A stretch of DNA of 64,000 bases from Octopus bimaculoides (Eukaryota), in NCBI RefSeq assembly GCF_001194135.2, contig NC_068983.1:74055763-74119762 (forward strand), written 5' to 3'. The notes beneath the pieces were generated by a model, which saw only the letters and a list, made by a program, of their open reading frames with translations, did no database searches and had not been told where the DNA came from. A program made the position numbers and the translations under genes. Shown here piece by piece: positions 13,811 to 49,966 of the stretch; the stretch's first letter is position 1; each line of letters starts with the position of its first letter.

Positions 13811-14518
13811 TTATTACAATTATTCTTATTTTTATAATAATTATTATTCTCATTAGCAGACCAAATAAAATTCTTATCAGCATTTCTTCTGGCTTTACAT
13901 TCTGAGTTCAGATTCCAACATGGCTGACATTGCCTTTCGCACGTTCAAGTTTGATAAAATAAGTACCAATCAAGCTCTGGTGTGTGTGTGAGTCAGTCAG
14001 TCATTGTAATCGAGTAGACCCTCTACCAAAATTTCTATAGTAGAAAGGATTATTATTATTATTATTACTACAGCAGTTAGAAAATCCTTAGTGGTACTTG
14101 TTCTGGTTCTTCACTTTCAGAGTTCAAATCCATCCTGCTGAGGTTGACTTTCTTGTTATCTTTCTGGGACTGATGAATTAAGGTACTGTTAAATGTACTG
14201 AGGACAGAATTAGCTTCAGCATAGAAGATTGTAGAAATAAGTATGCTAGCAATTTACCATGTTAAAAAAAATAAGACCAGGAACTGCAGGTCTTGAGCAA
14301 TTGGCTTTCCAAAACTGACATATATATTATGTAAGCAGGCCTGAGAGACTGGATGCTATGGGTAGTCTGTGGTTTGTGTTATATCACATGTTCGGATGGC
14401 GTGCCTTCACCAATAATGTACCTCTAATCAACTACCGAACTCTCACTTCCGACGACTCGACTCAACAGAACTCGACGTCTAGACTATCGATGGCTCCAGC
14501 TCGCTCTACCAACACTTC

Positions 14519-18971: not shown

Positions 18972-20517
18972 TCTTTCTTTTTGGCATTACGGCCATAGCA
19001 TAGAGGGGGACACCACAAGGACAGACAACACAAAACGTCGGGTACATACAAACATATAACGAATGAATAATGAAAATGAAATGGCTTTCCTACCCACCAA
19101 AGTAGGAAGTTCCATTTTTCAGTTATTTAAAATCAGTAATTATTTTCCAGTTTGTATAGTGTTCACACCAAATAGTTTATTAACTCCTCGAATTCTGTCA
19201 CTGATGGCATTTCGTCATATCTAAATCGTAATGCTGTTATTTGTATCCTGTCTGAATATTTCTCTCAATCTTGTTGCTCTCTCATCTTCCAGCAACACTG
19301 CTTTCATATTCCGGTTCTCCACCTTGTCTGCCAGTTTTATCCTTATTACGCCTTCCATCTTGGAAATTATTTTTTCTATTTCCACGCTCTTTCCGTACTG
19401 AAGCATCACTCTTTCGTATTTCCCTTTCGTAAGTGTGTGCTTTTTCTTTTATGCTAAGGGCGTATTGCTTCTGCTTGTTGTTGCTGATGGATCTGCTTCC
19501 TCCCGTGTTTTATGTTTCTTCTGTTGTAGCTCCATTTTATGTGATGAATTTCTATCTTTCTTCCTTGTTTTGGCCTCTATGAACTTTGTGTCTTGTTCTA
19601 CGTCTTCTGTCTTCTTCCCTACTTCCATTCCACCTTCTTGTGCTTCTGTTTCTGTAGTTTCCTTCGTTAGTTTAGGACACCTTCTTCTGATGTGACTCTT
19701 CTCTCCCCACTCATGACAAGTCGGAGGCCTCCCCCCCCCCCAACATTACTTCGAGTTTATCCTCATTGGGCAGCTCCACTGTTTCTGGAATTGCTCCGTA
19801 TTCGCTCTGATTTGCCATGAAATAAATCTCAAGTCCGTACCCTTATCAATTTATTTATTGGGTTTGGGTTATCCGTATCACTTTCACATCACCGCCTCCC
19901 TCCCCTTCTCCTGCAGTAAAAACTGCTGCTATTATCCATTCGGGATCAATTCTAAGTGAGATACTACCCACCCTGATCATGGTTGTGCGTTTACCCAGGG
20001 ATGCAGGCAGGAGTGTCCATTTTTTCCCACGTAGCATCTTAGTGGAGTGTCTTCTCGCCTCCTCTTCAGAGACAAAGGTAACCGCTACTGAGGCGTACCT
20101 TCTTCCTCTAGTATAGAATGTTATATTTTCTTTCAACTTTTCCAGACACTCGTCCACCTCCTCCTGCGTCACATTCTTGAGTTTCTGACTTCTTTTCGAA
20201 AACGTTCTGTAAGTTATTGCTCTACTTTCCATTTTCTCCATTTCTTCTGGGGAGGAGGGTCAACTTTATGTTCGACCCCTCCCTCTTTATCATCTTTTGC
20301 TATTTTTTGAGCAGCTCCGCATTACATTACAATACAATTCACTTTGTTCCAGCATACCTGGGACGACAATGCCCTGACTTCCCGTTGCTGCCGCGTAGCT
20401 CTTCATTTCGATAAACAGTCACAGGCCGCCAAATAATGATGGCGTCACACTCACAAAACTCCCTCTTGATTCAACTCGTAAAACTCCTTTTTTTTTTAAT
20501 ACAATTCGCAAAAAGAC
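18972..20517 (-). pseudogene. Unit 5: ORF1-only element, degraded, with tail
   Basis: SYAAA near 20390; ORF 19855-20241 (YTRGRRYASVAVTF); degenerate knuckle near 19700; tail 18972-19116. Confidence 0.85.
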
Positions 20518-20541
20518 AAGTATAAAGTATACATAGATGTA

Positions 20542-22182
20542 TTTATTACCCACTAGGGGCCAACAAAGAGGAGACAACACATCACATGCGGGACAAAGAA
20601 CAAGTAAAAAAAAAAGGAACAAAACAACTTATGAATAATAATGAAAAATGTAAATGGGACCCACTTACGAGCAGCTCCGTTTTCTACCCTTTACTTCCTT
20701 TTGAAACCCGTTCCCTCGATCCCTCGGGAATATCAATCCCAGTTTCTTTCAGAAGCCTATCGTACATCGTAATTTCCGGCAGTGCTTCCCAATCGAAATC
20801 CACCTCGCCGAAACTGTAACCGTGCTTATACTTAAATATTTTTTCCCCTTGTTCCTTTGTTGGTAGCACGCACCTGTGCCAATCCTTAATGTTATCGAAA
20901 CACACAGTTCCTACTTCGTTTATATCGTCCCAGGACAACACCTCTTCAATCAAATCGTCATTAGATCTATATATAAAAATTTTACATTTTTTCTTCCTTC
21001 TTGTTGACTGGTAAGAGGGAGTTTGTGAGTCTTTGTGTGTACTTGTCTTTTTTTGTTTTTGTGTCGGAAGGGAATGGGTAGGCTTGGTGTCTGTGGGCAA
21101 GGGTGGGTCTGAGAGGGTGTGGGTATGGTTTGCGGTTTAGAGTTCGAAACACTTGCCTTCTTTCTCTTTTTCCCACTTGTCTTCTGATATTACTTCCACT
21201 TCCTTTCTGGTTTCTTCTTCCCATTTGGTGGTACTCTCCAATCCTATTTCCATTTGCTCCTCCATATTCTTCAGTCGCTCTTCCTCTACTTTTTTGATCT
21301 GTGAAGGGCAGTTCGCTCTAATGTGGCCTTTTGGGCAATATTTAAAACATCGAAGGACTCTTCCCTCCACCCTGTCCCTCATTTTCACGTGATTCTGTGA
21401 TATTTTCCAGTATTTCACTTCAAACTTGGACAGTCATATTCAGTACCTGTCCTTTCCATATGGCACTTTATTTTTTTGTGGCCTGGAGAACCACTATGTT
21501 GTCCTCGTTTCCTAGAAGGACAGCGGCTGCTACTCAAGCCACATCAATCTCTGGTGGAATTCCTACGCTAATTCTCGTCGCACGTAGACCACGGTAAGTG
21601 GACAGAAGCACCACTTCCTCACTCTTGATGGATGTCGCTGCTTGTTTCCTTGCTGTTACCGCGTCCTTAAACCTCGCCTCCACTACTTCAAACATTGAAC
21701 CTCTTGCGAGGTACACAATATCACTCCATATCGGTCTTAATGCCTTCTCTACCTGGCCTGTAGTCACAACGTCGATTTTTCCTTTTGAAACTGAAAATGT
21801 TCGGTACATAATGGTTCTTTCTTTAATACTATTACGCGTCTCTTGCGGGAGGGACAGTTTCACTTCAGAATTATTCCGACTCAAAAATTCATTGTACATT
21901 CCCAAATTCTCAATATCAATCTTCTTTCCCTGGCATTTTGCCACGTCAGCAAAATTCCTCTTTTCCTTGTTCAATTTCTGGTCCATCTTCCGGACCGCCT
22001 CCAACAATTCCTCCTCCAAAGACGATATGTCTGAGAAGCTGAAGTCTTCTACAGACATATTTTCCCAAAGCTAACTCTCCTCTACGAGAAGAGAAAGCAT
22101 AAACAAGCAAACAAACCGCAGCAAAGCAGCACAAAACGTTCACACACGATAGAAAAAACACTATGAAAAACGCTAACAACCA
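20542..22182 (-). pseudogene. Unit 6: full-length ORF1-only element, frameshifted, flanked by a 27-nt direct repeat
   Basis: ORF pieces 21534-22058, 21137-21418, 20684-21100; tail 20542-20685; repeat at 20518-20544 and 22183-22209. Confidence 0.9.
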
Positions 22183-22206
22183 AAGTATAAAGTATACATA
22201 GATGTA

Positions 22207-23766
22207 TTTGTTTATTACCCACAAGGGACCAATGCACAGGGGACAATACATCACATGTGGGACAAAAAAAAAACAAGAAAGAAAAACAAAACTATGTATG
22301 AGTAACCTGTATGATAAAGAAAAATGTAAATGGGACCGCTCACTCCACTTACGAGCAGCTCTATTTTCTACCCTTTACTTCCTTTTATAATCTGTTCCCT
22401 CAAGAATATTAGTCTGTTTCCTCTAGAAGCCTATCGTACGTTGTAAATTCCAGCAGTGCTTCCCAATCGAAATCCACCTCCCGATAACTGTAACCATGTT
22501 TATGACTGAATATTTTCCCCCCTTGTTCTTTCGTTGGTAGCATTACACCTGTGCCAATCCTTAATATTATCCCCCCCCCCACCAAGTTCCTACTTTTAGA
22601 TCACCCCAAGACAAAACTTCTTCGATTATAAAAACTTTACATTCATTCTTTTTTTGACTGGGGGGAGGGAGTTTGAGGTTCTTTGTGTGTACATTTTTGT
22701 TCTTGTGTCGGAGGGGAATGGGTAGACTTGGTGTCTACGGGAGGAGGGTGGGTCTGAGAGGGTGTGGTTGGGGTGGGTGTGGGTTTAGAGTTCGAAACAC
22801 TTGCCTTCTTCTGTCACTTTTTCCAGCTTGCTGTTTCCCACTGGTCTTCTGTTGTTATTTCCTCCTTCTGGTTCTCTCCAACTTCTCTTCCATTTGTTCC
22901 TCTACATTCTCTTGTCTTTCTTCCGCTGCTTCCTTGGTCTGTGAAGGGCAGTCCGCTCTGTGGCCCTTTAGGCCACATTTATAACATCGAGGGATTCTGC
23001 CCTCCACCCTTACTCTCAGCACTGTACCTTCTATGGTAATCGTTTCTGCTAGTTTTTCTAGGCTTTCCGTTGAACCCTGAATAATTAGGTCCAGCGTCTG
23101 TCCTTTCCAGTTAGTACTTTCTGTCATAGTGGCCTGGAGGACCACTATTTCTTCCTCGCTGCCGAGAAGTACAGCGGCCACCACCCAGGCCACGTCAGCC
23201 TCAGGTGGGATTCCTTCTACCCTCACCCGAGATGCCCGCCTTTCCAGGTATGTAGGTAGAAGCACTGTACTATCCGTTCTCAGTGTTTCCGCCGAGTATT
23301 TCTTCGCTTCAGCGACGTCTTTCAGACGAATCTCTATATCTTGCCAGATTGTTGCCAAGGCCTTCTCAGTCTTCTCCGCCGGCATAATCCCTTTCTTTTT
23401 TTTCAATGGAGTACACCTTGAATACAATCGTTTTTTCGTTTAGTACTTTCAAAACTTGTTGTGAAGGAGACAACCTAACATCGCCTTCCTCTCTCACTAA
23501 CATTTTCTCATAACATTTTAAATCCGATACATTTACCCCCTTACTCTGGATTTCAATGATTCTACCGAAACCCTTCTAATCTTTTGTCCATCCCCTTTAT
23601 TCACGCTACCAATCCTTCTTCGGAGGAAGACATGACAGACGCACTAAAACCAACGCACAACATTCTTCAGCTGCTCTAAAGCAGAACACACACACACACG
23701 CACACGCACACGCACACACATTAAACCGTCTTACCACTGTAAAAATACCAGTAGAATACCGCATCC
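22207..23766 (-). pseudogene. Unit 7: ORF1-only element with tail
   Basis: ORF 22855-23427 (LLPTYLERR, CYKCGLKGH); C-terminal module like unit 6; tail 22207-22370. Confidence 0.88.
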
Positions 23767-23792
23767 AAGTATAAAGTATACATAGTTGTTGA

Positions 23793-24487
23793 TTTTTTTA
23801 ATTACCCATAAGGGGCATACACAGACAGGACAATACATGACATGTGGGGACGTATAACAATTAAAAAATAATAAAATTATGATAAATATGAATGAAAATG
23901 ATATATGGAAATGTGCTACTTACCCCACCTCAGCAACATCATTTACTTCCTTTTAGATCCAGTTCAAATTAATTCCATATCGTTCTTCCAGTTCCCTTCA
24001 CACTGCCTCTAGAAGTTCTTCTTCCAAGGTACGTGGGTAAGACAATCATCCCTTTCCGTCTTCATAGAGTTTACGGAGTATTCCCTGGCCTTTTCCTTAT
24101 TTTTAAAATGCACATCAATTGTGCCGTATCGGTTTTCTCTGACAAGATATGCTATATCTTGCCAGATTGGCTTCAAAGCATTTTCTATTTCTTCCGTAGG
24201 TTTGTTTTCTATTCTTTTTTTCCTTAATTGAATATACCTATATACTATTTTCCTTTCTTCCATGTTTCTTAAAACTTCTTTAGGTGGTAAGTTTTACATC
24301 ACCACCTTCTCAATTCAACATTTTTTCGAAATTCAAATTTTTTAGGCTTGCCTCCTTCTTTGGAACCTCCGTCGCCCCCACGAAACTTTTACCCTTTAGG
24401 CACTTGTCCATTTTTTTACCGATTTTACAAGCTCCTCCTCGGATGACGACAGTTCTGAAGACGATACCTCTGATCCGCTCAGGTCCG
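23793..24487 (-). pseudogene. Unit 8: 5'-truncated, internally deleted ORF1 element with tail
   Basis: N-terminal pieces 24284-24487 and 24009-24263 (YLVRENRYGTIDVHF); knuckle absent; tail 23793-23950. Confidence 0.8.
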
Positions 24488-26683
24488 AAGTATACATAGA
24501 TGTATATAGTGGTCAAAGTATTGCGCTTTATATTTGTATTTGTAGAACTGGAAGATGTCAATTTAATTTTTTAAAGTTAATGCAACTGTAAGAATCCATT
24601 TATCGTAGATGAGATGTGCACGGATTCGAATTTCAGGAAGAACTATTTAACATTCATGTAGTGTATAATTTATGTTGTGTAACTATGCGTATACTCAAAT
24701 AATTCTAATTAATTTATCTACCAACTCGTTTGTAAATATCCCCTTATTTTGATATCACTACTAGAAAGAGCAAAGAATAGTCACAAATGTAAATCCTTGT
24801 TAGATCTTTTATAATATTTAAAAGTTTTATAGAACCTATGTATACATGTTGATAGCACTTCCGATTGACAATTTTTAAAATTCTTTTGTCTATATAATAA
24901 TAGATATAGTTTCTATTATATTTGAGGAAAGCTGTAGCGATTCTTTTGTATAGAAACGGCAACTAAAAGATTTGTGTGTATGGTGTAGCTGAGTCTATTA
25001 TTGACCAATCTAATCTGCAGTTAACTTTGTTTTGTTTAAGTTTGTGTATATAAGTAGCTAATGAGGTAGTATTACTAGTTATACTCAGCTTAAAAGAATG
25101 TATGTGTGCTAAAAAATCTTTAAAATTAACAGAACTCTGTTTGTATACCATACTATTTGAATTATCAGTTAATATAATGATGCATTTGTATATTACATTA
25201 AATCTTCTACATTTGCCTTCTAAAGGACATAATTCTTTATTTTTACATGAACAATTTTTATTTTTATATTTCTGTTCAGAGGTATAATGCCTAATATTAT
25301 TATGATTATTTGTTAAGGTGCATGGTATTATCATTGAATTTACTGTGGGATCGTTTGTCGTAGAGTTAGGTATATTTACTATTTGTGAATTATTATTATT
25401 AGCTTGTGGTGTTGTTATCTAAGGCATGTTGTATATTTTCAAATGCATGATTTTTAGAATTTTGCTGGGATTTTGTGACATCTATATTATTGCTAGGTGT
25501 TCTCGCATTTTGAGTATTAAATGAAATCCTAGTGCTACTGTTTATTTCGTTACTAATATTGTTATTGTTATTTCTAAAGTAATTTTTATATTTATTAATT
25601 TTTCTTCTATTAGAACTGGCGATAATTGATCCTATGTTTGGCGTTGTAGAGAAGGATATTTTAATTGATGATCTGTTAAATATGTGGTGATATTTATGAT
25701 TACTAGGAAAGCTTTTTTTAAAAACTATATTTAAAAACATTTTTGCCTAACTCTTAACGTTTAATGAAAAGGGAGGTGTATACCAAATAATTTCTCTCTT
25801 TCCGCTCTTAAGTAATTTATTACATTTATATATTGATTTAGGGATTTGCGTAATTTTCACTGAGTGTTTTTTTGTTATTACTATATTTAGTAACTTTTTT
25901 TATCATCACGTTTTCTAGATTTGTCGTTGTTTTATAGAAGTTTCTTCGTTTCGTATTGAGTATTATTGTTATAGTTAAGGTTACCTTTATTTCTTGTTTT
26001 AGTATAACATGCAGTTTTGATTGATTCCATCTGTGCGATGTAAATCTTTAGTATCCTTTATATATTTAATGCTTTGTTTTAATCCACTAGCAGCTTAAGC
26101 CTGATTGTAATAGCTTGCATGATTATTAAAAAATTCTTCATTATAAGATAGATCAGATACTCTACAAGATATACTATTTACGATACTATTAAGTAATGAT
26201 ATATGATGATTTGAGTTAATGTTTATATATTTAAGGTATTCGTTGGGTTTATGGAAAGGAGAGTAAGTAGAAGTATTAAGATCTAGAGTTACGTCTAAGA
26301 AATTTGCTTTAGAGCAGCTTTCCTCAAATATAACAAATAAAAATTTTAATAAAATTTTTGTAGTTCTTCTCCCATTTTTCCTATTTTTCTTTTGGATCTG
26401 CCGTTATATACTAGGAGAGTATCATCTCTCTATAATCCTCCCTTCAGAGACGGGAAGTAATGCTTGGTCTCGTATAACAAATATAATCTTACTAAGTCGG
26501 TAATTTGTGCGGAATTGGACAATCTCATGGTGATATCAAATAAATAAAATAAATTATTATTGTCAAAGTGGCACCATAATTTGTCATTGAATTTAATAAG
26601 TGTTTTTCTAGCTAATAGAATAATATCGATTTCTAGTGGTGTAATATCAGTGAGACTTGACTAGAATTATAGTTTTATTTAAT

Positions 26684-27354
26684 ACTAGCAGAAATACCCG
26701 GCATTGCCCGGGTGAAAGAGAATAATGAAATCTAAAAACGCCGTCTAGACTACGCAACCCTCAACTGTTAGTAGCTACGATACCATATTTCTACATTAAT
26801 ANNNNNNNNNNACTGTTAGTAGCTACGATACCATATTTCTACATTAATAACTCTCCAATCCATGCCAGCATGGAACATAGACATTAAGTCGAATGCCAGT
26901 CTCTCATCTGGGAAGGTTTGGAATCAATGTTACCAACTGGGGACTGTGTCTCGCAGTGATAATAAAAAGACTCAAAGGAGGTCTGCAACGAAATAATTTT
27001 ACTCAACACTTTGCAAGTGAATCAGTCGAGGCAAATATGCGTCTCATTTACTTGACAATTTATGCACCACATTGCAGAAATCACAATGTAAGTATATCTG
27101 AAAGGGTAGTCTTACACTGTTGTACCGTTGAATTACAAATAATGCTCATCTGTTATGTTCGGCTTAAAATTTCATTAACATCAAAAATATATGAATTTTC
27201 ATGGGAGTTATGGCCGTTATACATAGAATATAATTTCCAAATTTCATAAAGATCCATTTAGTACTTTTTGACCTAGTTTTGGATAAGAAAACAAATGCCT
27301 AATGTGTGTGTTTATGTGTGTGATGGGTGTATATATGTATAGATATCTGTATGC

Positions 27355-27397
<43 letters not shown>

Positions 27398-27897
27398 TAT
27401 TTCATGTACGTCTATATATATATATATATATATATATACNNNNNNNNNNTATACATCTACACATATGTATACATATACATGTATGCATATAGATCTATAT
27501 CTCTATATATATATCTATACATATACGTGTACATATACATCTATATGTATACATATACATCTTTCTCTCTCTCTCTCTAAAGGTATCTGTCATTACAGTA
27601 TCGAAATATGATTGTTTCAGTTAGTGGAATAGTTTCATTTTTAAAGTGAAAGTATTTGACATGAGTGTTTTTGTTTTACTTTTGACACGTAATACTTAAA
27701 TAGTGGAGGAGATATTATGTTGCCGTGGGCTCGAACTCTGCAAGAAGTTAAAAATTTTCTTTGACTAAAACACAACTGGAACCTTAAGTAAGGCATCTGT
27801 AAAATTTGAATGAAATTGGTTGCGTAGTTCTCGAGTTTTAGGGATTGACAGACAGACAGGCAGACAGACACACATTCTTATTTTTATATATATAGAT
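26684..27897 (+). mobile_element. Non-autonomous Helitron/Helentron-like element inserted in the Penelope element
   Basis: Starts ACTAGCAGAAATACCCGGCATTGCCCGG; ends with (GACA)n...TTTTTATATATATAGAT; internal (TA)n. Confidence 0.6.
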
Positions 27898-28930
27898 GAT
27901 CGCTAATATAGATGCATAATAGTTATTAATGTCAAATTGTAAGAATGACAAATTGGTTTTATTTGGTAGTAAATGGAGCCAAGTTATTACTTCCTCTGTA
28001 CTGAACCAATGGTTACAATTGAGTTTTTTTTCTTTACTATAGGTATAACTCTGTCTAAAATATTTTTTCTGATCTTCCTGAGGTCTGATTTAGTCGGACA
28101 AATTAATATTATAGTAGGATTAATATTAAAATCCAATTTGTGGCCCTTCACATTAAAATGTGTATTTGGAGTGTATATTTCCGCGCGGTTTTAACATCCA
28201 ATTTATGCACAATTATACATTGTTCTTTGTGTCATTTCTAAATGTGACGGGTTAGTAATTTTGCATGATTTACGTATTTCATTATGTATAAAATCTTGGT
28301 ATTGAGTTGGGGTTATAGAATATAAATTTCCAGTTTTATCAGAGAAGACGTGTATATTTGGTGGCTTAATAATTTGACTATTTTAGCTAGATTCTTTTGA
28401 TATTTGGAAGAAAATGTTGAGAATTTTATGGATTTTGCCATTTCTAATATTGCGTTTTCAAAGTCAATTAATAGTGGATTATATGGTGGATTTTTATAAG
28501 ATTTGAGTCTGTAGTTATTATTACTTTGGTCTTTTACAGTTTCTTTGTTAGCATAAAAGAATGCCTTCCATCTCATTCTTTTTATTAAGTCGTTGGTTTT
28601 CTGAAGTGAGGATAATAAGTATGTGTCCTTAGGAGGAATCTGTATATCTTTAAGTGATATTCCAAGATATTGCTTTTCCATGCTTAAAAAATCCAGTATT
28701 AAGTGCTCTTTATATATAAAGCTCTATATATATATCTTTAATTAAATATTTTCTATGGGAATATGATATACTGAATTTGAAATGAGTGCTCTTTGTATAG
28801 AAGTGTCAAAGTATTAATATTATTAAAGTATTTAGACATTTAATACGAGCGATTATATATAATATAGTGAAATAATAGGAAAATCAATATAAAAAAAATT
28901 TTCAAAGATATATATGTAAAATAATATTGT

Positions 28931-28969
<39 letters not shown>

Positions 28970-29018
28970 CATATGTAAATATATAAAGTGTGACGGTTTA
29001 AAAGTTTAAGTATTTAAC

Positions 29019-29110
29019 GCATCCTACGATCGTTTCGCTAATATTGCCTTTATAATGGAATCCAAGATTGATAGACATTGATAGGCAATAGTTCCGCTCA
29101 TCAGTGATGG
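29019..29110 (-). ncRNA. Hammerhead ribozyme (type I, minimal stem III) upstream of the Penelope ORF
   Basis: - strand: CCATCA CTGATGA GC-GGAAC-TATTGCC [35 nt] GGCAATA-TTA-GC GAAAC GATC GTA| GGATGC; one A.G mismatch at the base of stem I. Confidence 0.75.
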
Positions 29111-29426
29111 AGAGGGCGAAATTTGTATAATTAATCGAATGTTATTTTAAAAATATGAAAGAATATAGGAAAGGGTGCTTTTTTTTTTTTTTTATAAATT
29201 AAAAGTTACTGTCTTTGATTTGCGTAGATACACTTTTGTACAAAAATTATGGAGTCTGTATATGTATTCTTGGTAAATCTTCCGCAGTAATCCATAATAA
29301 TTTTGTGCTGTATGTATCCAGTATTTTAACTTGCATTCCATATGTGATTCATAAATGTAGAAAAGTGTAAAGTATACATAGATGTATAAAGTAGTCAAAC
29401 TATTGAGTTTTATATTTGTAGAACTG

Positions 29427-31400
29427 GCTAGGGTTTCCTTGCGGATTTGGCTGTAGTGTCTTTCTGAAGACGTGAGTCTTGGATATATTGGCAATTGGAC
29501 ACTCGCTTCCGTCTGGATAACGATGAAACGAGACCGCTCTAATTCCAACGTTGGACGTATCGCAAACCAGTCTTAAAGGCTTATCTGGATCGAAATGTAC
29601 AAGGAGTTGATCTGAGGGTAAGCTTTTCAACTGTTCAGACGCTACTTGTTCCTCATCTTCCCACTTCCAGTGAGTTGCCTTCTTGGTTAAGAGATAAAAT
29701 GGTCCGGCCGTAGTGACCAGGTTTGGGATGAACTTCCTGTAGAACTGAACTGAACCCAAGAAAAACTTTAAGCTTGAGACGTCTGGAGGAAGTGGCATCA
29801 TCATGACTGCTTCGAGCTAAGATCCCTTCGCAAATCCTTCGGCCGATAAGGTGTGGCCAAGATATTCCATACTGAGTTGTGGGAATAGGCACTTTTCACG
29901 ACAGAATTTGTCCTTTGTCGTTCAGACGTGAGAGCAAAAGCCTCAGGTTGCTCAAGTGGTCATTGGCACCTTGCCTGCTGACAAGCATATCGTCTTGGCA
30001 ACTCCGGACAGATCACTGGTTAGGATCTCCATGGACTCTTGGACGTTACCAGGCGCTGAGTTGATTCCAAATGGGAGTCGTTGCTGTAGGAGTATTCCAT
30101 AGTGACTGCTGAGGGCTAGCCTTCGTTGACTCTCTGGTGCCAGCTTGATCTGGTTGTAGGCATCAACAAGGTCAATCTTCGTGTAACTTTCCAGCTTCTG
30201 CATCACTTCCTCTAGGGGTGGCATTGGATGACGGTGTCCTCTAGTTGATCGTTGATACTGCGTAGTCACCACAAATTCAAAATTTGGGCTTCGGGGTGCC
30301 CGCACTATGTTCCGGGCGTTCCATATTCGTTGAACTGGACTTACTTCAAGACTCCTTTGGCGATAACTTATTCGTAACCTTTGATCAGGTTATCACGAAG
30401 AGCGATCGGAACCGGTCGTGCTTTGTGAAAAACCGGCTTCGCCTCAGACTTGAACTTCACTTCCAGTTTGAAATCCTTAAGACATCCCAACTCTTCTTTG
30501 AAAAGATCTGGGAACTCGTCACAGAGATTGTGGAAATGTCATTGCAGGGAAGCATAAGGCTCGTTAGAGGTCTTAGGATGCGATGTTCTTGCACTCTCAC
30601 TTTTGTCTTGACTCTATGCATCTCAGTCCAAAAGCATTGACCGCAGAGATTCCCAGTGTTTGGATAGTGTTTCGCCTCAGCAAGTTCAGGTCAGGGATCT
30701 TGGTGACTATGTAAGGAACTGAGCTTTGCTTACCAGTCATTGAATCCTTGGTTTAGCCTGGTCCTGGAACCGTGAACAGTTTCCTTGACAACCTTCACCG
30801 CATCTTCGGTATCGATCGCGACTTGGACAGCACGGGCAAAGTCCAGCTCTGTGTCCTTGATCTTGAAAAGAGCCTTCAAGACAGCTTCATTGTTGACAGA
30901 ACATATGAATCTCTAAGAACTTCATCTTGAAGGTCTGTGATCGCAGGAAAGTCACAGGTAGCAGTGTCTTGACGTATACGCGCTGCCAGCTCCTGGGGAA
31001 TTTCAACTAGCTTCCGTTGCATGTCACTCCAGAACTTGAAACATTCTCGCACAATGAAGCGTTTTGGGTTGAATTGTTCTTTCTTAAAGTTAATTTCCTC
31101 CATCGTCACCTCGTTAATATCCGCGGGCGGACTCTGTTGAGTAGCCAGATTCACCAGTTGTTTATAAATAGTAGCGGTTTGATTCATCAAGAAAACTTGA
31201 GCCTTGTGCTGGTCAGGCATGGCATTAACCACAACAAATGTGCAAAATCTTGACCAGTAATGAGGCTACAGTTTTGATGTTGAATCAAAATGGTGGGATA
31301 GCAGTTGAGGAAGTTGGAAGACGGAAACTTGGACTGAAATCCTTTTTAGAAATTTGAACTTGAATCAGCCTTCTCAAAGCTTCCATGTCTTTTCTATGCT
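29427..31400 (-). mobile_element. Ty3/Gypsy LTR-retrotransposon relic (gag, RT, RNase H fragments)
   Basis: YTKIDLVDAYNQI..LPFGINSAPG (29952-30305); FLGSVQFYRKFIPNL (29400-29804); YSQIRKETLA; gag-like 30876-31232. Confidence 0.88.
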
Positions 31401-31762
31401 GTTGCGCCTGTACCGCCATTTATTCCCTCTGAAGGTGTTGTATGAGCAACTTTATTAGTTCACTAGTTTGTTCTGCCATTGTTGTCAAGGTAAAAATAGG
31501 TTACAGTAAAACTCTATATTACATAAAATAACGTATATTCCGTAAAACTTTTGACAAAACAATAATTTAACTGATACTAGAAATACAGGAAGACAGAAGC
31601 TTATGTGCAAAACTGGTTGTTTACCTTTCAAGGATCGTCTTTCTTATCCTATCGGCGACGCCACTTTGCTGTGCTTCTGTCGTTCACTCGCAAAGAAGAT
31701 AACAGTGATATTCCAGATAGGTTTTGTTATGTTTTAATACAGACTTATGCACGTGAAAACTC

Positions 31763-32029
31763 TTTTTCTTTATTGCCCACAAGGGGCCAACACAAAGACA
31801 TGTGGGGATACATAACAAATAAAAGAAGCTTCTTTCATTCCTGTTGGCCCACGAAGTGTCCGACTGCTCAGAATCTGACGAGCTGATTTCTTCCATTTTT
31901 CACTTGGCTTACCCTCCTCTATGCGGAGGGAAAGCACAACTAGCCTGCCCCAAGGTAGCAAAAGCAAAAGCGTTCAAAGAACACAACAATTTAAACAATG
32001 ATAAACTCAACAGCAACTTTAACAATATC
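31763..32029 (-). mobile_element. Unit 9: 267-bp mini-element (leader + first ORF1 codons + terminal tail) with 13-nt TSD
   Basis: MEEISSSDSEQ start fused to tail; CACGTGAAAACTC at 31750-31762 and 32030-32042. Confidence 0.8.
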
Positions 32030-32069
32030 CACGTGAAAACTCGTCCAGCAATAAATGAGTGAACATCGA

Positions 32070-33962
32070 TTTTTTATTACCTATAAAAGGCTAGACTTAG
32101 ATGCTCTTCGACAAATACAATACAAAACGCGACAAAACATAAACTAGGGGAACTAAAAATTAACAAAAAGTGGATAAGATTAGAAGAAAAAATTAAAAGA
32201 AACGAATGATATAATGAAAGAATGAAAAGAGGCGCAATGCCCACTCAACCCCCGAAGTTGAGTGGTTACATTTTCACAGTCTTTTCTCTTTTTCTTTTTA
32301 AAGTCTACATATATTTTTCAGTCATTTTTTTTCTTTCCCCTTTTTTTTTCCAAGTTCATATTAGTATTGAAAATTCTTTTACCTTTATTTTTCCACATCT
32401 TTCTTATATATATATATTTATATATATATATATATATATATAAATGTATATATATTTTCACAGTCACTTTTTCCTTTCCTTTTTTTTTTTCCAAGTTCAT
32501 ATTAGTATTGAAAGTTCTCTTACCCACGCTTTCCAACCTCTCGTATTCCACTACAGAAAGTGTATCATCATCCAACCAGTACTCCTTTATCCATATACCG
32601 CTCTCATCCATCTCAAATCCTTCTCTCGGCAGCTTCACTTTCACCAGTCCCTTCCATTTAGCTATCCTTTTCTCTGTGTCCACATTCTTCCTATATATTG
32701 CCAGGTAAGCCTTATTTTTGTACTCTTCTATTGTTTTTTTGCGTATTTTTAACTTCGGTTCGTTCCTTTCCTTTGACTTTTTGTTTTCTGTTGGATACTC
32801 TCTTGTCTTTACTTTTTCCCTTCTTTTGGGGCTGATAAAGCCGTAACCCCGCTCTTTCACATCCTTCTCCTTTACGTCGCTGTCGCGCTCAGCATCACTT
32901 CCATCCTCACTCGTTTCAATTTTACTTCCATCTCCTTTTGTTTTTTTTTTTTGTTCCTCTTTTTCACTCTGGATAAATTCCAGCAAGGGGCACTGAGCCT
33001 TCATATGGCTCCGTGATCCGCAGATATAACAGTTAGGGCGTCTTACTTCTACCACTATATTCAGCATTCCACCTTCCTTAATCTCAATCTGGTAGGGGAT
33101 TCGCTCTGTCTTCGAATGTGTGGCCTGTATTATTATTTCGAGGCCTTGGCCCCATCAATTTTGTTGCAGCTTCGTGACCTGCAGTGTGGAAACGCTACTT
33201 TCCAAATCCAGCAAGACGGCGGTCACGAGCCACACCACGTCAATTTCTGGTGGGACTGCCTCAATTTTTATTTTAGATGTGCGTTTACCTATATAAGTGG
33301 GCAGTAGCATCAGTTCGTTGGTTTTCAAAGGCACTGTGGAGTGTTCTGCTTCTTTTTCGGAAGCTAACCTTTCGTCCAAAGTGCAGTATTTTTTCCCTCT
33401 TACTACGTATTTGGTATTGTCCTAAATGGGTTGCAGGAATTTTTCTATGGTTTCCTTTGGCATATGTTCAACTTTTTTCGTTATAAGTGAAAGTGTTTTA
33501 AATATTATTGTTTTACTGGCGTATTCCCTTCACGCTTTTCTACGCCTTTGTTTTTCGAGGTCAAGTTGGTTAAATTTTAGGTTTTCTGGTTTATAGTTTA
33601 CACCGACGCGAACCCGCGTCAGTTTGGTTTGCTCGATTCATTTTCTTTGTCAGTAAATTCTTGTTCATTGTACATTTGGGTGTCCTTCTTAGCGTTTACC
33701 GTATATATTTGTTTTTTTTTCTGTGTTCACTTCCTCCTGTTCGCGACAGTGAATAGCTGGAAACATTTCTTGGTACATCTCATTAAGTTTGCTGATATGG
33801 GGGGGGGGGGCGCTGTTTGTGTTTTGGCTGGAACCCATAGTTTTAAAAATGTGTAAATAAATTACACAAGAAGTTTCAAAAAAGTTCAATTCGCCCATTA
33901 ATAGGAGAATTTCTAGACTCGATACTTTCCCTGTTAAGCAGTTTCAGAGCTCGATAATACAT
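32070..33962 (-). pseudogene. Unit 10: ORF1-only element with tail
   Basis: ORFs 33155-33379 and 32318-33067 (CYICGSRSHMKAQC); tail 32070-32270. Confidence 0.88.
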
Positions 33963-37650: not shown

Positions 37651-38934
37651 AAAATTTTTTATTACCCACAAGGGGCGACATAGAGGGGACNNNNNNNNNN
37701 NNNNNNNNNNNNNNNNNNNNNNNNNNNNNNNNNNNNNNNNNNNNNNNNNNNNNNNNNNNNNNNNNNNNNNNNNNNNNNNNNNNNNNNNNNNNNNNNNNNN
37801 NNNNNNNNNNNNNNNNNNNNNNNNNNNNNNNNNNNNNNNNNNNNNNNNNNNNNNNNNNNNNNNNNNNNNNNNNNNNNNNNNNNNNNNNNNNNNNNNNNNN
37901 NNNNNNNNNNNNNNNNNNNNNNNNNNNNNNNNNNNNNNNNNNNNNNNNNNNNNNNNNNNNNNNNNNNNNNNNNNNNNNNNNNNNNNNNNNNNNNNNNNNN
38001 NNNNNNNNNNNNNNNNNNNNNNNNNNNNNNNNNNNNNNNNNNNNNNNNNNNNNNNNNNNNNNNNNNNNNNNNNNNNNNNNNNNNNNNNNNNNNNNNNNNN
38101 NNNNNNNNNNNNNNNNNNNNNNNNNNNNNNNNNNNNNNNNNNNNNNNNNNNNNNNNNNNNNNNNNNNNNNNNNNNNNNNNNNNNNNNNNNNNNNNNNNNN
38201 NNNNNNNNNNNNNNNNNNNNNNNNNNNNNNNNNNNNNNNNNNNNNNNNNNATGTCGGAGGGACGGCGCAACCATGTCTTGCGAGTTTGTCCCGAACAGGT
38301 AAGGCCCCTCGGTAACACTGCCATGCCAGAGACTTCTGAAAATTATCCAGGGTCTTCGGCCCGAATGTACGTCGGAATAGACTGGGCAGCTGATTTTCGT
38401 CGAGACCTGGGGTTTCCCCTAAAGTGTCATCACATTTCGCCTCTACAAGCCCTCTATAGAAGAATGCGGTGGAACCCCCACCGCAGGCATTGCACAAGCA
38501 ACGGAATAGCAGGAGTGCCTTGCGGCACTCCGTGTACCATGTACCCAACTTCGATCTTCGATTCAACCAGGTTTCCTATCCACTGAAACTATTGAACTTG
38601 GGAAACATCTGCTTCGCCAGCGGAGACCACACCTGTTCACCATCCAGGTAGAACCAAAGATGCCTCAACCTCAGCGCATGTCTGCGCATCAACAGCCAAG
38701 GCATCCAAAGTCCACTTTTTAACGGTTCTTGGCAGCAAATAGAGCGTCTCACAAGCGGTTTCGATCACTTCCACAAAAAGCGGAAAAGCTGTCTTTCCAG
38801 CTTGATCAACCACGAATCAGGGCAAGGAACGACGGTTAGGCGGTAGGTGATGACCGATGCGATGAACACATTGGTTACCTCCGCCCTCCCTTTCAGGGAT
38901 AGCCACCGCCAAGACCAGGTCTTGACTATGTGGG

Positions 38935-40299
38935 TCACCCNNNNNNNNNNGCGATGAACACATTGGTTACCTCCGCCCTCCCTTTCAGGGATAGCCACCG
39001 CCAAGACCAGGTCTTGACTATGTGGGTCACCCTGCTCGATACCTCGGCCCAGTTCTTCTCTATTTGGAGGTTTGGTCCAAACCAAACTCCTAGCAACTTA
39101 ATCGGACCCTCCGTCCAACGTACTACGACGCTATCAGGAGGCATCGACTTGCCTCTCCAGGTGCCGAGCTGCAAGCCGACTGACTTTTCACGTTTAACTT
39201 TTGCTCCTGCCACCGTCTCGTAAACCTCTATGGCCTTTCCTACTATCTGTAGGTGGTCCATTTCGGTTACGATGATGGTGATGTCATCTGCGTAAGCTGA
39301 AACCGATTTTCCACAACCTGGCTGTCTCGGAATGACGCTCAATTTTCGCAGTAATGGCTCAAGAGCCATTACATACAAAATCGGGGAGAGTGGACACCCT
39401 TGACGAACCGAGCGTTTGATGTTGAACGGCTTCGATGAGAAGCCGTTCACCCGAACTACCGAGTCGATGTTATTGTAAATCTCGATGATCCACCTGAAAA
39501 AACCAAGACCCAGACCGAACTGCGCCAGAACGGACACCAGGTAGCGATGATCAACCCTATCGAATGCCTTAGATTGGTCTAAATGGACCAGTGCCCCACC
39601 CTTGCCAGCATCATTATTAAACTCCTCTAAAGTGTATCGTGTAAGATGGAGATTATCCTGGATGGTTCTGCCAGGAACGGCACATGTCTGTGCCTCCCCG
39701 ATCAGACCGTCCGTGACACGCGCCAATATTTTCGATAACACTTTGGCCAAAATTTTCAACTCTGCGTTTAGCAGAGTGATGGGCCGAAAATTATCAATGG
39801 AATCCCCCTTGTTCGGGTCCTTTCTGACAAGCGTCACCACTCCCCGGCGCACAGATCTGGGAATAAATCCGTTCTGCTGCCAGTTCGCGTAGACATTCGC
39901 CAGCATGTGCCCGAACAAGTCTGGCATACTCTTATACAACTCGTAGGGTAAACCACCCAGTCCTGGCACCTTACCCGCACCGCAGCCCGCCATCGCCTCA
40001 ATTACTTCCTCAGGTGTGATCGGCCCTTCACCGCGCTCCGCGTCCAGCCCCGATAGGCGCGGCAGCCCGCCGAGGAAGTCCGTTAGGTCCCTCCTNNNNN
40101 NNNNNNNNNNNNNNNNNNNNNNNNNNNNNNNNNNNNNNNNNNNNNNNNNNNNNNNNNNNNNNNNNNNNNNNNNNNNNNNNNNNTGGGTGAAGTACTCCTG
40201 AAAGGTCTCACACATCTCCTCGGGTTCGTTTATCAACTTACCTTGTTGGTTCGTTAAAGATCGAATTGTAGCATCATTACCACGTTGGGCTTCCACCAC
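38935..40299 (-). CDS. Non-LTR reverse transcriptase domain (L1/Tx1 clade)
   Basis: PG..GLP, FRPITLLNAELKILAK, DQSKAFDRV, VRQGCPLSP, AYADD motifs. Confidence 0.93.
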   Translation of the reverse strand: MVEAQRGNDATIRSLTNQQGKLINEPEEMCETFQEYFTXXXXXXXXXXXXXXXXXXXXXXXXXXXXXXRRDLTDFLGGLPRLSGLDAERGEGPITPEEVIEAMAGCGAGKVPGLGGLPYELYKSMPDLFGHMLANVYANWQQNGFIPRSVRRGVVTLVRKDPNKGDSIDNFRPITLLNAELKILAKVLSKILARVTDGLIGEAQTCAVPGRTIQDNLHLTRYTLEEFNNDAGKGGALVHLDQSKAFDRVDHRYLVSVLAQFGLGLGFFRWIIEIYNNIDSVVRVNGFSSKPFNIKRSVRQGCPLSPILYVMALEPLLRKLSVIPRQPGCGKSVSAYADDITIIVTEMDHLQIVGKAIEVYETVAGAKVKREKSVGLQLGTWRGKSMPPDSVVVRWTEGPIKLLGVWFGPNLQIEKNWAEVSSRVTHIVKTWSWRWLSLKGRAEVTNVFIXXXXG

Positions 40300-40517
40300 T
40301 CGGGCTCATCCTGCGGCCTTGATTCCCTCACAACCCATAGCACGAAGTCTAGCCCTGACAATGCAACCCATGTGTTTGGCTTCGAGGTCGAGGTGCTGGT
40401 TTAATGCCAGTCTCTTGGCCGTCACCTGAGTCGCAGAACCAGTTCTCATTGCTTCTTCTAATTCCTTAACTAAAACTGATACTCTCCTACTCTCTCTAGC
40501 CACTAAACTTATGCTTT

Positions 40518-41835
40518 CTTTCTATTTACCATCGGGACGTCTGGCATGTTCATTCTTCTGATTCGATCTTCTCGTAACTTCGTTCATCAGACATCTCATC
40601 TTTCCTTCTACATACCACTGGGGTGACTGGTATGTTCATTCTTGCCCAACCCAGCATTCCACAGCCCCCTCCGACAATAGGCAGTGCATCCACCCGATGC
40701 CAACAGCTCGTGGAAAGCAAATTCGTGCATCCACCCGATGCCAACAGCTCGTGGAAAGCAAATTCGTGCATCCACCCCTCCGAAATGGTGAGGTGTCACA
40801 CACCGTCGAAGCTCGAAACGATATGCGAAAAACCAGTGGTGATCCCCGGTGGTCATCCACCTGCAGTGGACCAGAGGTCACGACTCACCGGACCTCACCG
40901 AGACGAATGGATCATAACGTACCACGCAACCCCGTCCGGAGCGGGTCTTCACTTACAATTGACGCGGGTCATAACATACCCTGTGTCGGTCAGTCGATTT
41001 TACCAGGAGGCAGGCAATCGGCAGCCCACCAATCACCTCCGGAAGGCCCACGTCTTTCAATCGGGATCAACCCACACACTACATGGTCCCCACCAGACTC
41101 GCTAGAACCGCTACTGGGAAGGGACACATTTAGTTTGTTCATGCGGGGGCATATATTCGGCATGGTTTTTTCAACCTATCCGACATACCTCCCCACACGG
41201 ACGTAAGCACTTTCACCACGCCAAGGTAGTGTCCCAAAGAGTAAAGCCTGGCAGTGCATCCATCAATCAGGCAAAATTCAGTAGATCACCTCACTCGCCC
41301 ATCATCCACCGAATCCCGAATGATCATAACATACCAGGCAAACCCGATGGTGCATCCACCCACTGACTATTGGCGTCCTAGCTGCCAATATACCTTCACA
41401 GGGCAGGCACATAAACCCACCGCCACCAGTCACAGCGACGTATCCGTAGGCCATCGCAGGTGCAATTACTACTCGACAACCGGCCACCGACCGTCTCTCG
41501 ACTCCAATGTTCCAATAGGACACTGCAGGTGTTTACCCCAGCCGTAGCAACCCACACCGATGTTCCAATAGGACACCGCAGGTGAATCCGCTATCGATAA
41601 GAGAGGCCCACTAGCCTAGGGCGGGTGGGCCTCCTGGGGCCCACCCCCTGCAGGGGAACGACCGATGCACTCACCCAACGCGGAGAGATCGGTCAGACCA
41701 CATCTAATCAAGCCCCAGCATATCATAGTGTGGTTGTGACATCGTTCGGTAGAAAGCACACCCACCTGTGACGGAGCCATAGGTGCACCCACCCATGCAA
41801 GGGACAGTGGGTCATAACACATCAGGCCCCACGAA
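40518..41835. other. 1.3-kb GC-rich modular insertion splitting ORF2 of unit 13
   Basis: ORF2 breaks after GAGTCTGTT and resumes at AGCATAAGTTTAG; these are nearly contiguous in unit 19; internal 41-nt and ~25-nt repeats. Confidence 0.75.
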
Positions 41836-44291
41836 AACAGACTCAAATTTATTGGCTCTCTTGAGGACATACCACCATTTATTATTAATAATGGTACCGG
41901 TTAATGCCCTCTGAATCAACAACCTAATCCGATCTCTGTACTCCTTAATCGCCAAAAGGGACGTATTAAGTTTCCAGTAGCCGGAGCCTCTAGTATATCG
42001 CTTACTATATCAAGCCTACAGGTGATCATTTTATGATCACTGTAGCTGACTGGGTAAAACTGTGGACACTTAGCTATATTTCTATCTACTTTTCTAATTA
42101 ACACTATATATGACCTGGAAGATCCGTCGCTATTTGACCAAGTCCATATTGGAGCGTTCGGAAATTCCAACCTATAAGGGTCTGCGAGCTCAAAGCGACT
42201 TTGCAGTTCCAGGAAGCAAGAATTACCTTTTCTAGTAGTTTTTGAGCTAACATAATATACGCGTGCCTCGCAAATTGTGTTAAAGTCACCTGGTACAACT
42301 AAAGAATGTGAAGTACCGAGAAAATTCTCCAGATTTCGAAAAAAAATCACTTTTCCCGGATGGCTGGGGTGCATAATTTGCAACCAGTCTGAAAACTTTA
42401 CCATGGCTGAGCGTCAAGTCCATGACGACCAGCCTACCTTCTGGATCTGAATAAATTAACTTTTTCTCAGAAACCCAGTTTCTTTTTAATAGAACCCCAC
42501 CCCCTAGAAGGACAGCCTGGAGAGAAAAAACTCTCGTAGCCATTCAACAGGGGGAGCAGATCTCTCGGTTCTCTTAATCGGGTCTCTGTAGCAACAGTAA
42601 CATCCAAATCCCGCAACCTGATGTCATAAAGGAAGCAACCTTGCTCCCAGCCTAACATCAGGCCACGCACATTTAAACAACCTACATGAATGTTTGCCAC
42701 TACCTACCTCTGCATCAATGGTTCGGGGTTCCTTCTTCCACTTTTTCTTCCTCCTTTTCCTGGGCTCGTGCCGTATTTGGACGTAGGCCCTCGTAAATAT
42801 AAGGAGAAAAATCCATTCTGAGAGGGCCCATGTCGTGAAAGAATTCAGACTTGATCCGTCCGTAATCCTTCCGGCCTATCCTGTAGATTAGAAAGTTTTT
42901 TGATGTTGTTTTTTCCACTCGTTTGGCAGATGAAATAGCTGCCAAACGGTTTATTAGTCTATTGTTGGACGCCTTGATGGCTATGTACGTGTTTTCTTTT
43001 TCCTTGTCGTTTTTCTTTTTTAAATTTAGTGTGGTGGGGGCGGTCTGTGTCTTTTCTTTTGTTTTTTAGAAGCAGTCGACCACCCCTTCTCTCTATCCTT
43101 CTCTTCACTCTCTTCTGTCGATCTTGGTGTTATCTCTACTTTCGGTGTTGACGCTGGTGTTTCGTTTGTTTCTTCTAATCCTTCTTTCTCTTGTTCTTTT
43201 TCTTTTTCTTGTTCTTCTTTCGGTTTGCATTCCGACCTGATGTAGCCCTTTAACCCGCAATTAAAGCACCTTGGTTTTCTTCCTTCCACAAAAACTATTA
43301 GTCTTTCTTCTCCGCCTACATTTATGATTTCTGCAATTTCTTCAAGTGTTGTGGCTTCTGCTTGAATTAACATTATCAAGCATTGTCCCTTCCAGTGCTC
43401 CTCTTCTTCCACAGAGGCCTGGAGTATAGTTAGTTTGTCCTCCAGGCCCATCGTAATAGCTGCTACTAAACAAGTGGCATCAACTTCTGGGGAGATATTG
43501 ATTATCCTCATCTTTGACGTTCTTCTTCCCATATATACGGGAAGAAGAACCACCTCCTCCGTTCTGAGGGACTCCTAGGAGTAGTTTTTGGCTGCTTTCT
43601 CTGACCTAAACCTTACTTCGACCGTTCCAAATCTTTTACCGCGGTTAATGTATGTAATCTCTGGCCAAATAGGTTTAAAGCATTTTTCTACGATTTTCTC
43701 TTCTGTTTTGTAAATCCTTCCCCCCCCCCCNNNNNNNNNNNNNNNNNNNNNNNNCGCAATGTTGTACGTTTTGTGTGATTCTTCTCTTGTTGACTGTGTT
43801 GGTTGTTTCTTTTGGGGTGACCACTTGAATTTCCGACCCCTCTTTTTTTAATATTGCCATGAATCTTTGCAGATAACTTCGTTCCGTGTTTAACTGTGTT
43901 TCTTTCCTTCCTGCTACCTCGGCGAACTTTTTGGGCGACTACTGCCGGTGAATTTTCTTCCCCCAAAATATTTAGTTCTCTCGGTGTTACTATCGGTGAA
44001 ATTATTTCTTCACCTGCTTCAGACACAGGTGAGTACTTACTTGGTGGAAGCAAAGTAGTTTCCATTTTTTCCCCCACAAAATTGGCTTAAAAGCCACCAG
44101 ATATAATAACAATAATACCCCCGCAGGGAGGAATTTCAACAAGTAGCTTTCACAAAAGTAATTAAATTATCTTTAACAAGATAATAGCAACCACCCACAA
44201 CAGTACTTCAATCGAACAAAACACGGAGGAAAAGCAAAACGTACCAACAGCAGGTGCTTCCACAAGAATGAGAGTATCAAGACGATGTATA

Positions 44292-45955: not shown

Positions 45956-45987
45956 ATGAGACTATCAAGACGATGTCAAAACATGCG

Positions 45988-48177: not shown

Positions 48178-48205
48178 ACTGGCGAACTCACACTTTGAAC
48201 ATCGA

Positions 48206-49945: not shown

Positions 49946-49966
49946 AACTCACACTTTGAACATCTG

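Follow-up and report, generated by a model that had tools for sequence, protein, structure and literature searches.

Serial LINE insertion into a regenerated target site probably built part of a head-to-tail array in Octopus bimaculoides

The HeT-A/TART/TAHRE arrays at Drosophila telomeres and the Zepp clusters of Chlorella are arrays of non-LTR elements, the telomeric ones extending by end addition, without target-site duplications (TSDs), and HAL1 ('half-L1') elements are mammalian derivatives of the long interspersed nuclear element (LINE) L1 that bear only the first open reading frame (ORF1). Tandems that arose by multiple insertion have been described for other transposons, among them R1 tandems in Drosophila, separated by 33-nt rDNA duplications that are identical to one another, and dimers of the P element, in which an 8-bp TSD marks the junction (McGurk & Barbash 2018, PMC5932611). 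Penelope-like elements form a further point of reference, with short partial upstream copies (pseudo-long terminal repeats, pseudo-LTRs) and terminal extensions that are typically 30-40 bp long (Craig et al. 2021, PMC8557442). Here we analyzed 64,000 nt of the Octopus bimaculoides genome (contig NC_068983.1, positions 74,055,763 to 74,119,762; hereafter the window), in which three L1-superfamily LINE copies, units 6, 7, and 8 of a larger array, are separated and bordered by copies of a single 25-mer.

The exact 25-mer, AAGTATAAAGTATACATAGATGTAT (read on the minus strand as ATACATCTATGTATACTTTATACTT), was located by a scan of the window at 20518-20542 and 22183-22207, with one mismatch at 29363-29387 and with three mismatches at 23767-23791, while the number of matches expected by chance was 0 (100 shuffles). 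Its 16-nt core, GTATACATAGATGTAT, was exact at 20527, 22192, 24490, and 29372. The initial annotation of this DNA had reported five copies of the site, and the scan confirmed them: the 25-mer or its 16-18 nt core was present at 5/5 places, including the perfect 27-nt match between 20518-20544 and 22183-22209, the 19-nt match at 23767-23785, and the 18-nt match at 24488-24505. Also as described there, units 6, 7, and 8 each lie between two copies, and the low-coordinate copy directly follows an A-rich 3′ end; the units are on the minus strand, so that this left-hand copy marks the 3′ end of each unit. Along the minus strand the order of the locus is c0-U8-c1-U7-c2-U6-c3, with the following components:

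20518..20542, minus strand: site copy c3, the full 25-mer, located after the 3′ end of unit 6 and followed by the original downstream flank, GTCTTTTTGCG...
20543..22182, minus strand: unit 6, an internally deleted L1-superfamily LINE with a 5′ untranslated region (UTR), ORF1 containing a frameshift/stop, a C-terminal remnant of ORF2, and a 3′ UTR
22183..22207, minus strand: site copy c2, the full 25-mer, 27/27 identical to c3 when the preceding AA is counted
22208..23766, minus strand: unit 7, a LINE of the unit 6 kind, 72.8% identical to unit 6
23767..23784, minus strand: site copy c1, site positions 8-25 only, located after the unit 8 tail, ...AATTAAAAAAATCAACAAC
23785..24487, minus strand: unit 8, a 5′-truncated LINE beginning near codon 9 of ORF1
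24488..24505, minus strand: site copy c0, site positions 1-18, the native copy, in the 3′ terminal region of an element with Penelope-like architecture

Units 6 and 7, both full-length for their internally deleted, ORF1-bearing kind, were 72.8% identical over 1096 aligned columns, and their homology extended for ~1.05 kb, beginning exactly at the 25-mer. Searches with the array's own ORFs (tblastn) exposed no ORF2 in units 6-8 other than a C-terminal remnant, with neither apurinic/apyrimidinic endonuclease (APE) nor reverse transcriptase (RT) being present. The A-rich 3′ ends directly before the site copies were ...GGGTAATAA in unit 6, ...GGGTAATAAACAA in unit 7, and ...GGGTAATTAAAAAAATCAACAAC in unit 8, and the tails of units 6 and 7 were very short (AATAA / AATAAACAA). 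At its 5′ end, unit 8 joined the site across a TT(C) microhomology of 2-3 nt.

We consider it quite probable that the repeated 25-mer is a chain of TSDs generated by serial LINE insertion. An alignment of six homologous 3′ UTRs revealed that homology ended at TGGGTAAT(A)n and that the 25-mer followed units 6-8 only, while sequences other than the 25-mer followed the tails of the units at 44298, 49976, and 53245. Since these LINEs end in ...TGGGTAAT(A)n, the 25-mer belongs to the target DNA and not to the element. The initial annotation had named the opposite outcome, in which the 25-mer would be the normal terminus of LINE families, and this did not hold, given that related units and the homologous 5′ UTRs of units X and X2 were without it. 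Moreover, the 25-mer was present in a LINE-free setting, specifically in a 65-bp repeat located at 24488-24552 and 29363-29427. Finally, the flanking 27-mers of units 6 and 7 were identical at 27/27 positions, for which P was ~2e-4 under decay at the units' own rate.

An unbiased search of the array for isolated direct repeats, with one copy after a tail and one before a 5′ end, recovered three further regenerated flanks, which serve as controls:

44268..44288 (downstream copy; upstream copy 45956-45976), minus strand: TSD of unit X, ACATCGTCTTGATA[C/G]TCTCAT, 21 bp (20/21)
48182..48203 (downstream copy; upstream copy 49943-49964), minus strand: TSD of unit Y2, GATGTTCAAAGTGTGAGTT[C/G]GC, 22 bp (21/22)
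31750..31762 (downstream copy; upstream copy 32030-32042), minus strand: TSD of a 5′-truncated unit, GAGTTTTCACGTG, 13/13

Each of these 21-, 22-, and 13-bp flanks was common to neighboring units only. A pairwise comparison of the post-tail 40-mers from 15 tails, for which the shuffled maximum score was 10.5, gave the same picture: the six top pairs were all physical neighbors (U6-U7, 25; Y2-Z, 19.5; U6-U8, 19; X-W, 18.5; U7-U8, 18; 31770-32074, 13). Flank-sharing neighbors included units of different families, while same-family units that were not adjacent did not share their flanks. TSDs in the window measured 13, 21, 22, and 25 bp, and those of relatives measured 16 and 17 bp.

Two lesser resemblances between flanks were also seen. 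One was GTGAG[C/T]TGG[A/C]AGT, common to the sequences that follow the tails at 49966 and 53239. At ~20488, a run of ten A residues was followed by GGAGTTTTACG, in a manner resembling the tail plus GAGTTTTCACGTG at 31762 and 32042 (20470-20517 versus 31734-31776), and the 30 nt before that A-run had TGTATTAAAA in common with the sequence at 31749.

Relatives of the window RT, at ~49% identity, came from an ENA long-read-style assembly (ERZ21867824; contigs L002, 1-21947, and L004, 1-21689) and from the cuttlefish Acanthosepion pharaonis (L005, 6060-13123). Contig L002, which contains 0 N, carried three full-length LINEs (A, B, and C) on one strand; A and C were 87% identical, and B belonged to another family. 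In this contig the 16-mer CTCTTCGAC[G/A][C/A]GCCAG occurred once outside a LINE context, at 129, and three more times directly after AATAAAT.., at 6716, 13516, and 20104; thus, there were four site copies for three elements, as in the architecture of the window. The same pattern was seen in L004 with TTAGCCT[T/A]GCTA.., although with 40 nt or less shared and a more complex structure. The cuttlefish sequence was a solitary full-length copy of ~7 kb that ended in ...AATACAAATAAATAT (AATAAATAT) and had a perfect 17-bp TSD. A conserved 3′ motif of the relatives, GGCCTTGTGCC...AATAAA, was the counterpart of GGCCCCTTGTGGGTAATAAA in the window. Together, the ends, TSDs, and repeated sites of these relatives indicate a lineage whose members terminate in AATAAA and a few further A-rich nucleotides, generate long TSDs, and return to sites already used.

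Joining the flanks in silico gave the site as it would have been before LINE insertion, ...GACCACTAT-ATACATCTATGTATACTTTATACTT-GTCTTTTTGCG... on the minus strand. The 25-mer would originally have closed the 3′ terminal region of the Penelope-like element, as its final 25 nt. Two features are relevant to this element:

24488..29362, minus strand: decayed, AT-rich retroelement with RT and a GIY-YIG-like region (Penelope-like), in which coding homology is collinear from 28741 to 24978
29363..29427, minus strand: 65-bp upstream repeat of the Penelope-like terminal region, which holds the unoccupied paralogous site 29363-29387

Three L1-superfamily LINE copies (units 7, 6, and 8) would then have entered the 25-mer by target-primed reverse transcription with staggered nicks, a chemistry we infer. 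The site copies place the nicks of units 6 and 7 at identical positions both times, 25 bp apart, and those of unit 8 only 11-18 bp apart, at positions differing from those of units 6 and 7. Fill-in of the stagger would leave one site copy on either side of each new element, so that the target is regenerated at every insertion. What is shown is that the insertions were independent, that the TSDs form chains, and that units 6 and 7 employed the same pair of nick positions.

Unit 8 appears to have inserted into the upstream-most copy, which followed the Penelope-like element and not a LINE tail. Copies c2 and c3 retain site positions 1-7, which are absent from c1; therefore, unit 7 was already present when unit 8 inserted upstream of it. 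Units 6 and 7 could have entered in either order. Since the later arrival, unit 8, occupied the upstream copy, growth was not polar, and the order of insertion can only partly be recovered. In this light, the serial insertion proposed in the initial annotation stands in that the target was regenerated each time, but the long TSD envisaged there is reduced to 11-18 bp for unit 8, and the proposed position just 3′ of the previous tail does not apply to that unit, which entered the copy after the Penelope-like element. Likewise, the suggestion that the array records insertion order is retained for unit 7 before unit 8, but not as a complete, polar record, and the parallel drawn there with the growth of a CRISPR array is one of form only, since unit 8 went to the upstream copy. 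The fifth copy, at 29363-29387, has to be taken out of the insertion series, in that it is an unoccupied paralogue within the Penelope-like 65-bp repeat and not the product of a LINE insertion. We also set aside the earlier emphasis on a palindrome: structural signal was absent from the dyad of the 25-mer, with z-scores of -0.4 to +0.24, and other junctions re-used quite different sequences. A metagenome scan for the 25-mer returned 0 matches.

Several points weigh against a TSD chain. The 65-bp repeat may be a short pseudo-LTR or terminal extension, or else a long TSD of the Penelope-like element itself. There was no consensus of nick sites across the seven junctions compared. The tails of units 6 and 7 are so short that the point where tail gives way to TSD can be placed only to within 1-3 nt. 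The assembly is gapped and of the short-read type, and the order of units across the repeated 25-27-mer depends on it entirely. Finally, no other genomic copy of the unit 6, 7, or 8 families or of this Penelope-like family was retrieved, and no close relative is on record, so that the absence of the 25-mer from dispersed copies is established through relatives and not within the same families.

Among the alternatives, the one that survives best, although we regard it as unlikely, is true sequence-specific targeting, in which the LINE endonuclease would recognize the near-palindromic 25-mer just as R1/R2/Tx1L-type elements recognize their targets. Such recognition would fit with nicks at the same places on both strands for units 6 and 7, and with the relatives in L002 that hit one site three times. 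However, units of the same lineage in the window were located in unrelated sequences, with no nick consensus among the seven junctions; moreover, unit 8 was nicked elsewhere, the paralogue at 29363 was never occupied, and the dyad was without structural signal.

It is improbable that the 25-mer is element-borne, that is, a common 3′ terminus located after AATAAA in the families of units 6, 7, and 8, or the 5′ terminus of the next unit, or, in a variant, a tail for RT recognition shared with the Penelope-like element. The 25-mer was always positioned ~0-25 nt past AATAAA, where the 3′ end of the RNA is expected, and the Penelope-like element also ends in it. Yet related units ended at an A-rich tail and had different flanks and TSDs, and the sharing of flanks tracked adjacency and not family. 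The site precedes unit 8 even though that unit is truncated within ORF1, the downstream units 5, 6, and 7 belong to different families, and the AT-rich element is unrelated to them as well. Likewise, the relatives ended at AATAAA (+0-4 nt) with unrelated TSDs. Two other routes by which the 25-mer could have traveled with the LINEs were rejected: 3′ transduction is unlikely because no A-run follows the 25-mer, and a HeT-A-like 5′ 'tag' from an upstream promoter was discounted on the basis of there being one site copy per junction and of the 25-mer not being LINE 3′ UTR sequence.

We give slightly less credence still to an assembly artefact, in which contigs were mis-joined at the repeated k-mer and the serial arrangement is unreal. 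The window contains 15 gaps, and four 10-N gaps were flanked by exact tandem duplications: 5579-5588 (48 nt), 17913-17922 (59 nt), 26802-26811 (38 nt), and 38941-38950 (82 nt). Because of these duplications, the four gaps are most likely unmerged contig overlaps and not missing sequence, with the consequence that ORFs read across them are artificially duplicated (e.g., the ORF at 17127-18311). A further gap, 27440-27449, is inside a TA/CA microsatellite of unknown length; it and gap 26802-26811 are both within a secondary insertion in the Penelope-like element, clear of all site copies and of units 6-8. Against a mis-join, the region from 20.4 to 24.6 kb was gap-free, the neighbors of each copy were coherent (a tail upstream, and a 5′ UTR or truncated ORF downstream), and the same architecture was present in gap-free contigs of another assembly (L002, 0 N). 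The weakest alternative, tandem duplication or unequal crossing-over of one unit plus its junction followed by divergence, accommodates the homology of units 6 and 7 over ~1.05 kb from the 25-mer onward, but is scarcely credible given that their 27-mers are identical while the units are 72.8% identical (P ~2e-4), that the 5′ truncation of unit 8 falls elsewhere and its site copy is shorter, and that the X/W and Y2/Z junctions unite different families yet share flanks.

Returning to serial insertion with regeneration of the target, the simplest account of the re-use that we can infer is that a good target, once accepted, is doubled by each insertion. More speculatively, a resident ...AATAAA end adjoining the site might favor a nick there, or priming by an RNA that ends in AAUAAA. 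It is conceivable, although we put it forward only tentatively, that this cephalopod L1/Tx1-like lineage is an 'array-building' LINE that homes intrinsically to the short linker behind a resident ...AATAAA end, possibly because AAUAAA-ending RNA would prime best on the TTTATT strand exposed behind a resident copy. If so, such elements together with their ORF1-only derivatives would build single-orientation arrays of tens of kb at internal loci, and would represent both a non-telomeric analogue of the HeT-A/TART arrays and a direct route from a dispersed transposon to a cluster- or satellite-like locus.

Units 6-8 are part of an array of at least 19 LINE units that extends head to tail from ~14.3 to 55.9 kb of the window (42 kb), as recognized by tblastn with the array's own ORFs. 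All units were on the minus strand (19/19), and the array was bordered on both sides by non-LINE DNA. Searches against Pfam identified RVT_1 at 38935-40299 (E 4e-31) and Exo_endo_phos at 50887-51381 (E 4e-5), and the best match among solved structures was human L1 ORF2p (1.5e-32), compared to 1e-20 for R2; these matches place the array elements in the L1 superfamily. An ORF1 of the array matched Octopus bimaculoides proteins, while exact-protein look-ups of the ORF1 proteins from the window and from O. bimaculoides found none on record. A zf-CCHC match in ORF1 was just under the Pfam cut-off (20.0 versus 20.8 bits, E 7e-4), and a CX2CX4HX4C motif was seen in ORF1 translations, while the putative region resembling an RNA recognition motif (RRM) was supported by no model.

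Most units in the array, including units 6, 7, and 8, comprised ORF1 and a short C-terminal remnant of ORF2, without APE or RT, and are internally deleted, non-autonomous copies, interspersed with a few that carry APE/RT. We observed that the C-terminal parts of the long ORFs of units 6, 7, X, and 17 were homologous to the segment directly after the N-terminal RT fragment in unit Z (segments compared: 20684-21100, 22415-22735, 44649-44810, 50228-50419, and 53417-53768), which indicates that in the 'ORF1-only' units an internal deletion like that of HAL1 has joined ORF1 to the extreme C-terminus of ORF2. Between units, ORF1 identity ranged from ~25% to 82%, indicating many subfamilies. Unit 8 and the unit at 31770 were 5′-truncated. 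The most complete element was a single LINE:

37659..44267, minus strand: most complete LINE of the array, with ORF1, APE, and RT, and several assembly gaps

This LINE is a candidate autonomous partner for the ORF1-only units, which we suggest were mobilized in trans by fuller copies such as this one. Descent of the whole array from one site was rejected, in that the flank after the lowest unit (14515) was unmatched upstream of the top unit (score 8.5, noise).

The AT-rich element behind which the LINEs are located was assessed by means of a stitched translation, which matched 10 proteins, one of them from O. bimaculoides, with E down to 1.7e-45. These homologues contained RT-like motifs (FDI..FYPS, MGS, YRDD, and FLDV), followed by a CxC...CPL.G.C motif and then by a VVY...YIG...R...E region. 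The GIY-YIG match (PF01541) was weak and under the cut-off (E 0.0047), and neither an RVT_1 match in Pfam nor a relative of solved structure in PDB was found for the element. At the level of motifs, the architecture of 24488-29362 resembles that of Penelope-like elements. An E-value scan of 24300-29600 detected no hammerhead or other Rfam family at E<=1, and Rfam and tRNA scans of the window yielded only microsatellite-driven miRNA noise. The nearest Penelope-like relative, O. bimaculoides locus L001, was ~70% identical in coding sequence and 34% N, and was too diverged and too gapped for the 3′ terminus of the family to be visible there. The 65-bp repeat compares 24488-24552, the 3′ end of the element, with 29363-29427, directly upstream of its 5′ end, and showed 90% identity over 51 bp plus a 15-bp block. 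Two other features are within or next to this element:

26667..27906, no strand assigned: secondary insertion of 1.24 kb in the Penelope-like RT region, containing both of its assembly gaps and microsatellites
29428..30305, minus strand: LTR-retrotransposon pol fragment (RT, RNase H), cut inside RNase H at the 65-bp repeat

Within the secondary insertion, 27641-27897 was 91% identical to an O. bimaculoides contig (L001, 4189-4433), which marks it as a dispersed short repeat, and the rest was TA/CA microsatellite that gave spurious matches to miRNA families. An LTR-retrotransposon pol gene adjoined the array in L002, L004, and the window alike; from the A-run and flank resemblance at ~20488, one could speculate that the pol block in the window was a polyadenylated retrocopy put into the same TSD chain and later disrupted.

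Elsewhere in the window, a repeat of ~380 bp formed an inverted pair ~1 kb apart (3829-4207 and 5231-5679) and had a third copy within the LINE array (34405-34798), at 90-94% identity. The first 60 bases of the window were exactly repeated at 59-118 (a tandem duplication, 1-118). Just outside both ends of the LINE array, 56190-56400 and 13616-13968 had an inverted similarity of ~70%, and the former contained GCCTTGTGCC, a motif characteristic of the LINE 3′ UTRs of the relatives.

The mechanism we favor has already been described for other transposons in the form of multiple-insertion tandems (PMC5932611), and this locus is a new example in cephalopod L1-like elements. It offers a base-resolved case of retrotransposition through staggered nicks that regenerates its own target, such that a head-to-tail array can start from one accepted site, and in three assemblies one cephalopod LINE lineage does this repeatedly. 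These observations bear on the formation of transposon clusters, from which satellites or small-RNA source loci might arise, and on the annotation of cephalopod repeats, and they show that TSD variants provide a means of reading a partial insertion order. No new type of adaptive or recording system emerges from them.

When compared with known systems, the locus is like CRISPR arrays in form only, in that a short repeat is doubled for each unit added. Here, the genome is eukaryotic, the units are whole retrotransposons, and the repeat is a by-product of staggered nicking, with no leader-polarized addition (unit 8 is upstream of older units) and no dedicated integrase. With HeT-A/TART/TAHRE and Zepp it shares long one-orientation, head-to-tail arrays composed of autonomous together with ORF1-only (Gag-only) non-LTR elements, with 5′ truncation in many, but it differs in having TSDs at its junctions, no TTAGGG repeats in the window, and non-LINE flanks on both sides; the junction TSDs and lack of TTAGGG in the window rule out a telomeric array of the HeT-A/TART type. 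The likeness to Penelope-like elements (PMC8557442) is confined to the AT-rich element, with its single long ORF, RT-like motifs, Cys motif, GIY-YIG-like region, and short direct repeat of the 3′ terminal region just upstream of the 5′ end, while in contrast to those elements no hammerhead was detected, the repeat is only 65 bp long, and the RT and GIY-YIG assignments come from weak or motif-level matches.

In the case of the site-specific LINEs R1, R2, and Tx1L, the likeness is in nick positions that were used twice (units 6 and 7) and in one site that was hit repeatedly, whereas members of this lineage in the window, L002, L004, and L005 were at unrelated sites, among which no conserved target motif was found. 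L1 and HAL1 correspond more broadly: the APE- and RT-bearing ORF2 is nearest to human L1 ORF2p, 5′ truncation and TSDs are present, some copies keep ORF1 without most of ORF2, and ORF1 has a putative RNA-binding region and a candidate CCHC knuckle. Unlike L1, the elements end in ...AATAAA plus 0-13 A-rich nucleotides instead of a long poly(A), their TSDs tend to be longer, and they tend strongly to be located right behind a resident copy. Finally, with multiple-insertion tandems the locus shares same-orientation elements with exactly one TSD copy between them, a target that is regenerated at each insertion, and independent insertions evidenced by different elements and different 5′ truncations. 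It departs from the R1 and P tandems in that different subfamilies of an L1-superfamily lineage are involved, in a cephalopod, with long TSDs of 11-27 bp. Moreover, the LINEs entered the terminal region of a different retroelement and not rDNA, and such insertion occurred repeatedly over a 42-kb array in which the site sequence changes.

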